A DNA stretch of 63,994 nucleotides, filler included, from Reticulomyxa filosa (lineage: Eukaryota > Protista > Foraminifera), in assembly GCA_000512085.1 (NCBI GenBank). It is 20 parts of 20 records of this genome, joined end to end, with 100 filler letters (N's around TTAATTAATTAA, not from the genome) between each part and the next. Parts side by side here need not be neighbours in the genome. Positions count along the whole stretch, not along the records: positions 8,648 to 12,701 come from ASPP01026601.1; 19 more parts are not named here. The stretch is one strand, 5' to 3'. The stretch's first letter is position 1, and each line of letters begins with the position of its first letter. The position numbers and the translations under genes were made by a program. Below are positions 8,648-54,441 of the stretch, one piece after another. The notes under the pieces were generated by a model. The model was not told the DNA's origin. It did no database searches and saw nothing but the letters and a program-made list of their open reading frames with translations.

Positions 8648-10656
8648 ATGAACTTGTGAACAAAACTAAACACCGAAATTTCGAAGGAAAATATTATTTG
8701 GACATGAACATGTTTATGAATATTAAAAAAAGTGAAAATAATAGCTTTCATAATCAAAAGGAACAAGCACACAAAATATATTACAGAACAATCCAATTTT
8801 TATTGTTGAACTGCATACATAAAAAAAAAGTTGAAATACCATTTGGAACGTGGTTGCAATGTGCGAAAACAGAGTTTTTGATTTAAAATGAAATAGATTA
8901 CGTATATATTCATTTCTTTGTTTTATAAAAAAGAAATTTCTTTTAGGACCTTTGATCGATAAGAGCTTTTCCATTTTTGGTATGCATATTCATATGCAGT
9001 AACACGATGATATGGTAAAATTTCAATATAAAAAAAAATATCATAATGATAGATTACAAATTATAAACTCGATTTCCATGGATATAACTAAACAAAAAAT
9101 ATCTCCAATTCTGCATCAAGTGTATTGGCTAGTCTTTGCAATTTGTATTTTATTCAAGTTGCTGAATAACAAGTAGCAAGTAGATCTATACTTTCTTTCT
9201 TATAAAAAAACATTTATAGTCCTAATTTAAATTTTATTTAAAAACCAATTTTTTATTTACTTCAAAAAGTATATACTTTTTTAACGACCTTCTAAGTACT
9301 TCTATAAACAGAAATTTCAATCTAAATAGGTCTTTGCAAAAGGGATGATTTTTTTAATATTTTCTTTTAGCCTATCTAATGTACAATTACGAAACTAAAG
9401 AAATATAATTTGCTAATTCTAGTTTTGTTCCACGTTGTCTATCGCCAAAAGTACACTCCTTTAACCATTTGCTTCTCATTTGATACGATTACAAGAAAAA
9501 CAAACTTGACAAGTGCATTCAAGAGTATATGTATAGGAAATATCAATTTTATTTATTTGCAAAATTTCAATTGTTTCAACTATTGCTTTTTTTTGTAAAG
9601 GAACAAAAGAAAAGTTAAGCATATTTCGAGCATCCACTAATATTTTAAAACATACTACTTAAAGATTTGATAATACACTTGACGCAATATTAATCTGTTA
9701 ATATGCTAGTCAATGCTGTAGAGATATTCAAGCAACTCTTTATCTGATGTGTTTTTTTTCTTTTTGCATTGCACAATCCGTCTTTTCTTGTATAAAAAAA
9801 AATTTTGAAACGTTTTTGAAAACGTATGTAATGATTTTGTTTTTCATGAAAATACAGTTAATCAATTCCGTTAGTATTTCATTAGTTCATTATGTATGCA
9901 GTATAAAAAGATTGGTTTGAAAAAAGTCAATGAAAACAACAGCAAAAATTCAATCTCCATTTTATACAAATTGATATTACGGTACAATAGGGAGTATACA
10001 CGGTTACATGTAAACAAATAACAAAACTATGATCACTTCAAAAGAAGGGTAAATAGCATCTAGAATACTCGATGTAAATATAGCAGTTATGATAAAAAGA
10101 TATGCAAATTTATTTGGGTTTATTATTATTATTTTGGAAATACCTTGCGAATAACAACAAAGACATAATTTGTTGAAACGAAGATTTGAATAGTTATTTA
10201 TTGAAAATCGATCCAATAAACTAAAGAAAATTTCTGACGTCAGCAAGACTGTTTTAGACATTTTTAAATCTGTCCTGGCTATTGACTGCACTATTGATGA
10301 CCTTTTTCTTAGAAGAAAGAAGTACATTAAGCGGAATAGATGATCATGACAAAAAGGGTTTTAGAATTTTATTTTCAACTCCCTCGCAAATGTAAAATTG
10401 TAATTGTTTTGTTTTTAAATAGAAAATCTTCAAAATAGAAACTGTTTCTATTTTTGCATAAAAAACTACATTCCTCCATTTAATGTCCGTTTATTAAAAA
10501 AGAGTTTTTCCAAAAACAATAATTTCATTCATATTTGCAATTAGTTTTTTTTAAAAAAACTGACTCACTTCTCCGTTTTTGTAAAATTAAAAAAAAATTC
10601 AACTCCAAATTTTTTACTGAATTTTTGGTTGCCTATTACTAATAAAACAAAAAAAA

Positions 10657-12643
10657 ATGAAGCAAGCAAAGGAAGAAAACTCAAGAGATGAAGTAAAGAC
10701 TGAAGTAAATTCATTTTCACTCGAACATTCTTGCTTTAACAAAGACTGGATTTTGCGGTCCTATCAACAAGGCAAATCAAACATTTTATTTGTTTGATTT
10801 GCAAAGAAATTGTAAACAATCCTATGGACATAAACTGTCCACATCACGCAAATATGGATGAAGTGCTAATTGCTGGAGAGCATTGCCTAAAATTATTTCT
10901 CGAAAACAATAACAACTCTTGTCCAATTCAACCACATGACAACTGTCAGTATTCAAGAAATAACGCTGTGAGAAAATACATTGATGATTTGACAGTGATT
11001 TGCATAAGACAATTTGAACAAGAGATAAAAATATCACATAAAACTGAAAGAGAAGGAGAAATACCTGGAGTGATTAAATGCGATTTTAAAGGAAAATTAA
11101 AAGATTTAAATAATCATTTAATCAATGAATGCCCTTTAAATTTAATCAATTGTTTGTTTAAACCATTTGGTTGTAATCATACCTGCTTCAGCTACAATTT
11201 AAAAGATCATCTAATTACAAACATGAAATTACATTTTGATTTGGTTACTCAATTATTACAATCTATGAAACAGGAAATTCAATTGAAAGATAATCGAATC
11301 AAACAAATGGAAAGAGATTACCAACAAGAATTGCTCAAGTATCGAGCAGATATTGAAATGATTAAAAGAGATTTCAATGAGAAAGAAAAACAAGTTTTAT
11401 CTAATCATGCAAAAATAGTTAAAGCATTGGAAGAAAAGAATTCCAAATTAACTCAAGATTATGAATTATTACTCCAAAAATTAAATCATCAACATAAAGA
11501 AGAAGAGAAAGTAGAAAACAAAAAACAAAGCTATGAATATACTGCTTTATCATCATTATCTATTAATTTTAATTTGTTTCGTTCATCGTACAAATTAATA
11601 AATACATTCAATGGACATACTAACATTGTGCCGAGTATTGATTACTCAACATTTGATGATTGTCAATTCATTTGTTCTGGATCATATGACAAAACAGTTC
11701 GTGTATGGGATATAAACAAAAATAAACAAATTCAATCATTCAATAGACATTTACTTGATGTGTGTTGTGTGAAATTTTCACAATATCATTATCACAATCA
11801 TCATTGTAATGTCGTCTGTTCTTCATCCAGTGATAAAACAATTCGCTTTTGGGATTTCAAATATAATCAACAATTGCAAGTATTCAACGGACACACTAAC
11901 TGGGTTTATGGCATTGAATTCTCACCATTTAATGGTAGTAGATATTTATGTTCTGGATCTGGTGACAAAACCATTCGTTTATGGGATGTTGAAACGTACA
12001 AATCATTACATGTTTTCAATGGGCATACAAAATCTATTAGATGTATTGATATTTCACCATTGCAAAGCAATAACAACAATAATAAAAATAATGATATTGG
12101 TATGATTGGTGGCAATGGATATACAATTTGTTCTGGATCATCTGATCATACTATTCGAATATGGGATATTGAAACAACAAAACAATTGATTGTATTCAAA
12201 GGACATAAATATGATGTGAATAGTGTAAAATATGGATCAAATGAATTAGTAAATATAATATTATCTGGATCAGATGATGAAAGTGTCCATTTATGGGATA
12301 TTCGATCTAATAAACAAATTCAAATGTTTAAAGGGCATACAAATAATGTACATGCTGTTGAATATTCTCCATTTGCAATAAAGATTGGTGATGAAGTTGT
12401 GAGCGGTAATTCAAATGTGATATGTTCTGGATCATTGGATAATACAATTCGATTTTGGATATTCGATCAAATAAGAAAGAATTGTATGTAATCAAAGGAG
12501 ATGAAAAAGATAATGGAATAACATGTCTTACATTTATATCGTTGAAAAAGAAAGTGAAGAATTACGAACAAAAATCAAAAGATGATTGTGGTATTTATTT
12601 ATATTATGGTTCGAAGAAAGGTCCAATTCGTGTTTGGGGATGA
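10657..12643 (+). CDS. RING-like/TRAF zinc finger + coiled coil + WD40 propeller protein (TRAF7-like architecture); two frameshifts, so possibly a pseudogene
   Basis: CLICK..CPHH..EHC..SCP, CDFKGKLKDLNNHLINEC, KPFGCNHTC..LKDH, a coiled coil, then six GH..SGS.D..WD repeats plus a terminal blade. Frameshifts near 10771 and 12457 (tggat for tgggat). Confidence 0.85.
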
Positions 12644-13173
12644 ATTTTTTGTTTAAATTTGATATAATTTTTTTGCATTGAAAGACATTATTTTTTTAGT
12701 TNNNNNNNNNNNNNNNNNNNNNNNNNNNNNNNNNNNNNNNNNNNNTTAATTAATTAANNNNNNNNNNNNNNNNNNNNNNNNNNNNNNNNNNNNNNNNNNN
12801 NCTCAACAACGTTTCTCACCAGTCGTTTCTCATTTTTTATGTTCGCGTGATGAAGTTTATTTTATTTTTCTTTTTTTTTATATTTCAAAAAACAATAAAA
12901 AAGTGATAATTTTATCAATGAAAAAAAACTCAAAGTACACAACACTGAACAAGAAAATGCAACTTTGATATCAAGAGAAAAGCAACTTCACGACGCAAAA
13001 AAAATTACACGTATTCAAAAAAGTGTTTTTCGCCAAAAAAAAAAAAAAGCAGTTAATACCGGAGAAGGGCAGAAATACAATGATTATCAACTGGGGACAA
13101 TTACAATTAAAATTACCTTAACAAATAATATCTATAATAATATTAATCACCAAAATTATTTTTCGAATTTGAT

Positions 13174-53290: not shown

Positions 53291-54441
53291 AACGATTTTT
53301 GTACTAAATTTGTTACTAATTATGTTAGCTCATTTGTTCACTTTTTTTAAAATATCAATCAAAATATTCAAATGTTTATTTAACATAGGTGTATACTATC
53401 TTCATGTTTGACACATTTCGTTCATCATCCAAATTAATCAATACATTTACTGGACATACAGACTCTGTGTGGAGTATTGATTATTCAATACTTGATGATT
53501 GTCAATTCATTTGTTCTGGATCAGATGATAAAACAATTCGTGTATGGGATGTTGATAACAACAAACAAATTCAATCATTCAATGGACATTCATCTGATGT
53601 GAAATTTTCATTATATCATTATCATAATAATCACCAAAATGTCATTTGCTTTTCATCATATGACGACATTCATTTTTGGGATTTCAAATATAATAAACAA
53701 TTGCAAATATTCAATGGACACACTTCGTGGATTAGTGGCCTTGAATTCTCACCATTTAATGGTGGTAGATATTTATGTTCTGGATCATGGGACAAAACAA
53801 TTCGTTTATGGGATGTTGAAACATCAAAATCATTACATGTTTTCAATGGACATGAAGATGCTGTTTGGTGTGTTGATATTTCACCATTACAAATCAATAA
53901 TAACAATGATAATAAAGTGAATAATATTGGTGTGATTGGTGGAAATGGATATACAATTTGTTCTGGATCATTTGATGAAACCATTCGAATATGGGATATT
54001 GAGACAATCAAACAGTTCAATGTATTCAAAGGGCATACAGGCTATTTGAGGAGCGTAAAATATGGATCAAATGAATTAACAAATACAATATTATCTGGAT
54101 CATTTGATAAAAGTGTTCGTTTGTGGGATATTCGATCTGGTCAACAAATTCAAGTGTTCAATGGACACAATGACTGGGTGTATGCTGTTGAATATTCACC
54201 ATTTGTGATAAAGAATAGTAGTGGTAATTCGAATGTGATATGTTCTGGATCGGATGATAATACAATTCGCTTTTGGGATATTCGATCAAATAAGAATGAA
54301 TTGTATATTATCAAAGGAGATGATGGAATATTCTGTCTTAAATTTATTGGATTGAAAAAGAAAGAGACGACTAATAATATTGCATATGATTTAAATTTGT
54401 GTTATGGTTCAAAAAAAGGTTCCATTCGTATTTGGGGATAA
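53291..54441 (+). CDS. WD40-repeat protein (same family as 10657), 5' truncated, intact frame
   Basis: 350-aa exon with six clear WD repeats ending GSIRIWG*, preceded by an intron (~53324-53388) and an exon end FVTNY. Confidence 0.93.

Follow-up and report, generated by a model that had tools for sequence, protein, structure and literature searches.

Diversified recognition families in which the binding surface is under positive selection occur in animals (TRIM, NLR), plants, nematodes (F-box), and fungi (HNWD). The animal gene TRAF7 is generally described as conserved and not as an expanded family. In HNWD proteins, the hypervariable sites are positions 10, 11, 12, 14, 30, and 32 of a 42-residue WD40 unit, and the d-a loops and b-c turns that form the top face of the propeller have been described for the same proteins (PMC12222747). 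TRAF7 is an E3 ubiquitin ligase with the architecture RING - TRAF zinc finger - coiled coil - WD40 (PMC11218536). The finTRIM, primate TRIM5-type, and nematode and plant F-box families are lineage-specific expansions of RING/E3-adaptor proteins, often with a coiled coil, in which the binding loops of the recognition domain are under positive selection (PMC2657112, PMC8120010). Here we describe the gene RFI_30374 of the foraminifer Reticulomyxa filosa, which lies on the contig at positions 8648-12701 of the window, a 63,994-nucleotide stretch of 20 joined parts of this genome. RFI_30374 probably represents a family of TRAF-like proteins in which the entire propeller has been duplicated, the scaffold has been constrained, and the top face has been diversified by positive selection, with putative ligand-binding and adaptor functions.

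A Reticulomyxa propeller family compared with HNWD and TRAF7

The best 120 database matches to RFI_30374 were all R. filosa paralogues (40-77% identical); further representatives at 54-70% identity came from R. filosa alone, and no match at or above 54% was found elsewhere. Based on these searches, the family appears to comprise at least ~130 distinct proteins, seen only in R. filosa. The propellers of 88 matches align end to end with that of RFI_30374 as seven blade-specific units, and the median pairwise identity of the aligned propellers is 62%. The search for representatives was uninformative as a source of an outgroup, being dominated by long bacterial and metagenomic multi-propeller proteins.

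Like the HNWD proteins of Podospora (HET-E, HET-D, HET-R), this family has, on the interaction surface, a small set of hypervariable positions in each repeat at which dN/dS (omega, the ratio of nonsynonymous to synonymous rates) is above 1. The first-pass annotation of this locus had equated its variable sites with those of HNWD, and the alignment bears this out, as the six HNWD positions correspond to GH+1 to GH+5 (counted from the Gly-His pair of each blade) and to residues around the Asp of the S-X-D motif. Unlike in HNWD proteins, no HET or NACHT domain was found in the RFI_30374 protein, and Pfam searches of the N-terminal regions of 55 paralogues returned no NACHT, HET, death, or other effector domain (0/55). 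Further, the blades within one R. filosa protein are 31-56% identical, whereas HNWD repeats are 80-100% identical, each R. filosa blade has its own conserved loop, and the 88 propellers align as seven blades. Diversity in R. filosa therefore lies between whole-gene paralogues, whereas in HNWD it is produced by repeat shuffling and changes in repeat number within alleles. Because it lacks both a NACHT domain and near-identical internal repeats, the R. filosa family is an analogue of HNWD and not a member. It shows another way in which WD40 propellers can become hypervariable, namely through divergence of whole-propeller paralogues and not through the shuffling of repeats.

The domain order is shared with TRAF7, and the R. 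filosa family has a zf-TRAF domain, a long coiled coil, and seven WD40 blades. A Pfam match to zf-TRAF occurs in 37 of the 55 paralogues whose N-terminal region is long (best E 2.6e-8); no match to the MATH/TRAF-C domain was found in the RFI_30374 protein. Residues 1-311 of P0002, an intact paralogue whose whole protein is 70% identical to the RFI_30374 reading frame, were modelled with AlphaFold (AF2). The model (predicted local distance difference test score, pLDDT, 87.5) begins with zinc-finger modules and continues into one helix of ~94 residues (192-285, pLDDT ~98), and its top matches in the Protein Data Bank (PDB) are the RING and zinc fingers of TRAF6, TRAF5, and TRAF2 (TRAF6: E 4e-6, TMt 0.56). 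On this model, the domain order of RFI_30374 is RING-like, zf-TRAF, coiled coil, and WD40, as in TRAF7, with a putative RING that sequence searches do not confirm. Unlike TRAF7, the R. filosa family has well over 100 members, a hypervariable propeller face, and an unusual RING-like spacing; the likeness described here is one of architecture. The recognition domain of TRIM and F-box proteins is B30.2/SPRY, FTH, or similar, unlike the WD40 propeller of the R. filosa family, and Pfam searches of the RFI_30374 protein and the 55 N-terminal regions found no B-box, F-box, or SPRY/B30.2 domain. The resemblance to these expansions is one of analogy and not homology. In their logic, finTRIM and the nematode F-box genes are the nearest analogues of the R. 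filosa family, and in architecture TRAF7 is.

The propeller was modelled from the paralogue P0070, which is ~71-73% identical to RFI_30374 over this region. The AF2 model (pLDDT 89.8; predicted template-modelling score, pTM, 0.88) has 28 strands forming seven blades, and compares to seven-blade propeller structures with a template-modelling score (TM) of ~0.9. The closest solved structure by sequence is a consensus-like bacterial WD40 propeller from Nostoc (2YMU, E 4e-98), and the closest by fold are Thermomonospora PkwA and the designed WRAP-T (TM ~0.9). These bacterial and designed propellers (2YMU, PkwA, WRAP-T, Tako8) share a repeat of the type S-G-S-x-D-x-T-I-R-x-W-D; they are highly repetitive or designed, and nothing in our results links them to diversification among paralogues.

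Hypervariability and positive selection on the propeller top face

The first-pass annotation had compared the RFI_30374 propeller with a second copy in the window (53410-54290) and claimed that the two differ at the same sites in every blade. The scaffold strings on which that comparison was based are all present in the plus-strand open reading frame (ORF) at 10794-12491, as are the residues listed for the X of S-X-D in blades 1-6 (Y, S, G, S, D, L) and those following GH (TNIVP, TNWVY, TKSIR, KYDVN, TNNVH). Blade 2, which reads RH-LLDVC, had been left out of the latter list. The end of the propeller had been placed at 12460, which is a break in the reading frame; the seventh blade lies beyond it in another frame and continues to 12640. 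As the second copy is outside the piece analysed here, we instead compared the 88 full-length paralogous propellers with that of RFI_30374 (89 propellers, 612 blades).

Per-position entropy over the 612 blades was highest at GH+3 (3.94 bits), X of S-X-D (3.93 bits), GH+5 (3.51 bits), and GH+2 (3.16 bits), while the scaffold positions that flank them have 0.1-1 bit. The same four positions are the most variable in every blade, in agreement with the original two-copy observation. In a consensus of 77 sequences, the positions around GH and S-X-D in blades 1-6 that have no residue at or above 50% are the same ones, and the other consensus positions without a 50% residue are in the c-d and a-b loops and in blade 7. 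When placed on the secondary structure of the AF2 model, the ten most variable residues are all in d-a loops or b-c turns, consistent with the earlier assignment of these sites to the top face of the propeller. Of 21 residues above 3 bits, 16 belong to the top-face set (Fisher p = 2e-8). The variation is not evenly spread over the surface, since entropy stays at or below 3 bits throughout the c-d loops and d strands. The original description of the paralogues as conserved everywhere except at the ligand face slightly overstates the case: the scaffold is nearly fixed, but a large part of blade 7 and certain a-b loops, in blades 6 and 7, vary moderately.

To examine selection at the codon level, we used the DNA of 11 paralogues, in each of which the propeller is one uninterrupted coding stretch, together with RFI_30374 (12 members). 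Likelihoods under the GY94 and MG94 codon models were computed with our own code, which reproduces the log-likelihood (lnL) of the scaffold in IQ-TREE exactly (-4727.357). The silent rate was set from the scaffold, and 24 top-face codons were defined beforehand, four per blade in blades 1-6. For these codons, omega is 6.0 under GY94-F3x4 and 5.8 under MG94 with third-position frequencies, and twice the log-likelihood difference (2dlnL) relative to omega = 1 is 259 and 409, respectively. The neighbouring GH+1 and D+1 codons have an omega of 0.8-1.6 under both models, and the scaffold codons 0.26 (GY94). Sites simulated along this tree with omega = 1 had 3.0 residue types each and a pairwise identity of 0.60; the observed values are 6.5 and 0.13. 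The claim that the variable sites are positively selected is thus upheld, with omega well above 1.

A blind per-site scan identified 24 codons with omega >1 at p < 0.05 and 199 codons under purifying selection. Eighteen of the 24 positive codons are among the 24 predefined ones (Fisher p = 1e-20), as are all 11 that remain significant after Bonferroni correction. Five of the six others are in blade 7, where positively selected sites lie near 12512-12535 and 12608-12625. As a rough check, the pairwise Nei-Gojobori method gave a proportion of nonsynonymous differences (pN) of 0.59 for the core sites and 0.106 for the scaffold, with a gene-wide proportion of synonymous differences (pS) of 0.235. 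Because G+C at third codon positions is 17%, saturation of silent sites was checked separately; codons differ at identical residues with a frequency of 0.133, compared with 0.40 at codon-usage equilibrium, indicating that silent sites are unsaturated.

Several signs point to a functional face, among them the distinctive residues found at the hypervariable sites. Trp makes up 9.3%, 17-fold above the neutral expectation; Tyr, Asn, Asp, Gly, and Ser are enriched, and Ile, Leu, Val, and Lys are scarce. The top-face signatures of the 89 propellers are all unique (89/89), and each blade has 85-89 different four-residue combinations. RFI_30374 and its closest relative, on contig L001, differ at 43 of 354 residues, and their silent divergence is only ~20% below that of other pairs, yet just 5 of 24 top-face sites differ. 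In blades 3-4 the two have no top-face differences, although 14 silent and 14 other replacement changes separate them there. Therefore, the face has been driven apart between most paralogues and kept within this close pair.

Explanations for the diversified face

The propeller probably duplicates as a whole unit. Purifying selection holds its scaffold, and positive selection has driven apart about four top-face residues per blade (GH+2, GH+3, GH+5, and the X of S-X-D), together with equivalent sites in blade 7, so that each paralogue would have its own putative ligand-binding surface. The coiled coil may oligomerise the protein, the top face would bind a protein or peptide specific to each paralogue, and the zinc-finger end could relay binding by ubiquitin-ligase or adaptor activity. 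The site-specific fast change marks a candidate diversified recognition repertoire. The pattern is unusually clean, with ~28 defined residues set on a propeller that is rigid and almost invariant, and the family is therefore directly testable. It would also be a natural library of putative propeller binders on one scaffold.

Several points weigh against this interpretation. The RFI_30374 protein has no Pfam RING match, the spacing of its RING-like Cys/His residues is atypical, and a search of PDB sequences with the N-terminal family profile returned coiled-coil noise and no TRAF chain. The DNA-level analysis covers 12 of >130 members, which are paralogues rather than alleles, and the omega of ~6 rests on the assumption that silent changes accumulate as fast at the hypervariable codons as elsewhere in the gene. 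When the 24 codons are fitted alone on a rescaled tree, omega is 1.10 and the tree 13 times longer, a value that is uninformative because divergence at these codons is too great to tell silent changes from replacements. A strict parsimony lower bound, counting one change fewer than there are residue types, comes to a ratio of 0.88, which is too conservative to decide. Finally, with two single-base frame breaks, the RFI_30374 copy could be a recent pseudogene.

Among the more specific explanations is an innate-immune or allorecognition repertoire that senses pathogens, or the cytoplasm of non-self partners once plasmodia have fused, and responds through the TRAF-like end. This would be a special case of the recognition repertoire proposed above, and we regard it as possible but short of probable. 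The hypervariable positions coincide with those in the WD40 repeats of fungal HET-E/HET-D (PMC12222747), and immune families such as finTRIM (PMC2657112) and the F-box genes of nematodes (PMC8120010) typically combine positive selection with large lineage-specific expansion. TRAF-type modules serve as immune adaptors in animals, and the Trp/Tyr/Asp/Asn-rich composition of the variable sites resembles that of binding hot spots. However, the 55 N-terminal regions lack a NACHT, death, or effector domain, the neighbouring genes provide no consistent immune context, and the closest pair keeps its top face, for which stable specificities are as good a fit as an arms race. An immune or self/non-self role would be an attractive candidate function. 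Tentatively, the giant, multinucleate Reticulomyxa may have a germline-encoded intracellular recognition repertoire, built from a TRAF-like E3/adaptor scaffold and a hypervariable WD40 face, that is used against bacteria or viruses or against non-self plasmodial fusion. If so, it would be an independently evolved counterpart of the animal TRIM/NLR and fungal HNWD repertoires, and Rhizaria would gain its first described candidate family of immune receptors. In the literature that we searched, no comparable family is described from Rhizaria or with a TRAF-like/WD40 architecture, and nothing ties Reticulomyxa to such a family.

The retained face of the closest pair would also speak for paralogues that are substrate adaptors and diversified to bind the cell's own proteins, for example in regulation of its huge cytoskeletal and transport apparatus, with no arms race. 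Ordinary neofunctionalisation after duplication also brings positive selection, and the steady purifying selection on both the scaffold and the N-terminal region (omega 0.26-0.4) is consistent with such a function. We nevertheless consider this rather unlikely, since 89 unique signatures and 85-89 combinations per blade exceed the expected need for housekeeping partners, and an omega of ~6 across all blades is unusual for housekeeping paralogues.

Silent-site data bear on whether diversity could have arisen without selection for it, either through concerted evolution, with gene conversion homogenising the scaffold and lowering dS, or through a local mutator acting on these codons. The star-like tree speaks for this, as does an unusually long identical run that RFI_30374 shares with L001 (global p = 0.02), but conversion-like runs at p < 0.01 occur in just 1 of 66 pairs. 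The pS of the N-terminal region (0.25-0.31) is the same as that of the propeller (0.23-0.29), and silent divergence is close to that of the shared upstream non-coding DNA. Within two codons of hypervariable codons, silent divergence is not raised (0.159 versus 0.131 elsewhere), and conversion would erase the top-face differences too unless selection retained them. This explanation is accordingly improbable. Relaxed constraint, under which top-face residues drift neutrally while the fold is conserved, would fit the general tendency of WD40 loop positions to be the least conserved across the superfamily, but it is hardly tenable given a rate above neutral with omega = 1 rejected, the excess of Trp and depletion of aliphatic residues, the much lower variability of other exposed elements (c-d loops, d strands), and the conserved top face of the closest pair.

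Gene structure, second subfamily, and other features

Positions 8648-12701 are identical to a 4,054-bp R. filosa contig that is AT-rich (~27% G+C) and annotated with RFI_30374 (P0001, 100% identity). This is the sole gene of the contig and extends on the plus strand from an ATG at 10657 to a stop at 12641-12643, with an ORF at 10794-12491 (Table 1). Alignment with paralogous contigs shows that the reading frame is disrupted twice, with one base lost each time; the 3' break sits in blade 6, within a G run where a Trp codon and an Asp codon meet. The gene pieces on either side of the breaks were searched separately, and were joined with NNN or X placeholders for analysis. The public model of RFI_30374 sidesteps both breaks through an internal Met start and an intron that deletes ~18 residues, and the models of RFI_30374 and P0020 both bypass indels by an internal start or an invented intron. 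In the closest relative, L001, two compensating indels are present in A/T homopolymer runs at ~1980-2090. The indels in RFI_30374 and L001 may be sequencing errors or very recent lesions, and a pairwise pN/pS of 0.22 for the scaffold speaks against pseudogenes of long standing.

Table 1 Features of the RFI_30374 locus, in window coordinates.
Feature	Position	Strand	Basis or detail
Upstream non-coding stretch partly common with the L001 contig	10181..10653	+	blastn, 3 blocks, 80-89% identity
Coding sequence (CDS) piece 1, including ATG	10657..10770	+	conserved with N-termini of intact paralogues P0002, P0003, P0006
5' frame break, 1 base missing relative to L011 and L001	10768..10773	+	DNA alignment
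RING-like Cys/His zinc-binding region, C-x2-C ... C-P-H ... C ... C-P ... H-x2-C	10791..10946	+	family consensus
TRAF-type zinc finger	11100..11210	+	Pfam PF02176, E 3.7e-6, 28 bits (cut-off 27)
Predicted coiled coil, long single helix	11220..11507	+	AF2 helix of paralogue P0002
WD40 blades 1-6	11595..12455	+	Pfam WD40 (PF00400), 6 stretches
Blade units 1-6	11595-11705, 11727-11849, 11871-11981, 12003-12161, 12183-12293, 12315-12455	+	
Blade 1 hypervariable codons GH+2, GH+3, GH+5	11622..11633	+	entropy 3-3.9 bits; per-site omega 4-64
GH+2/+3/+5 codons, blades 2-6	11754-11765, 11898-11909, 12030-12041, 12210-12221, 12342-12353	+	
Blade 1 X of S-X-D codon	11685..11687	+	entropy 3.9 bits; per-site omega 3-33
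X of S-X-D codon, blades 2-6	11829-11831, 11961-11963, 12141-12143, 12273-12275, 12435-12437	+	
3' frame break, GG where paralogues have GGG	12456..12458	+	DNA alignment with L001, L002, L011
CDS piece 3, blade 6 end and blade 7, stop 12641-12643	12458..12643	+	

In the region upstream of the gene (8648-10650), scans detected neither a further gene nor an Rfam family, and no tandem repeat of note. About 290 non-coding bases within 10181-10653 match the region upstream of the L001 gene at 80-89% identity; as this stretch is common to both copies, the 5' flank belonged to the duplicated unit.

A second subfamily has a short conserved N-terminal exon, followed by an intron and the same hypervariable propeller. 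The exon is found 100-250 bases upstream of each propeller on contigs L003, L005, L006, L009, and L010, and N-termini of this type are also present in P0067, P0073, P0096, P0097, and others. Its motif is roughly E-E-I-Q-I-I-I-H-H-W-I-R-x-L-N-I-K-L-G-W-I-x-D-F-D-K-L-V-V-N-Y, with no match in Pfam, and many members of this subfamily are annotated as propeller-only proteins. The sequences upstream of short-N-terminus propellers at L002 3-266 and 1456-1530 and at L004 1437-1609 were also inspected; a U-box ORF is located upstream in L002, and degenerate TRAF-like N-terminal matches are present in L002 and L004. These sequences suggest that the short-N-terminus subfamily arose when the N-terminus of an ancestral TRAF-type gene was swapped.

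Over 11 paralogue loci, no consistent gene neighbourhood was found, including any immune context. Neighbouring genes include one encoding a Peptidase_C14 (caspase-like) protein on the minus strand of L003 (3851-4387) and one encoding an 848-residue, TPR-rich protein in L009 (4080-6828). Within the propeller of RFI_30374, the a-b loop of blade 2 contains a short imperfect 14-base tandem repeat (11774-11805) in the codons of a His/Tyr-rich stretch, which is probably incidental. The a-b (bottom) loop of blade 4 has an Asn-rich low-complexity insert (12060-12120), with a pLDDT <50 in the paralogue model, that is flanked by the strongly conserved motif G-V-I-G-G-N-G-Y-T, which almost all paralogues share.

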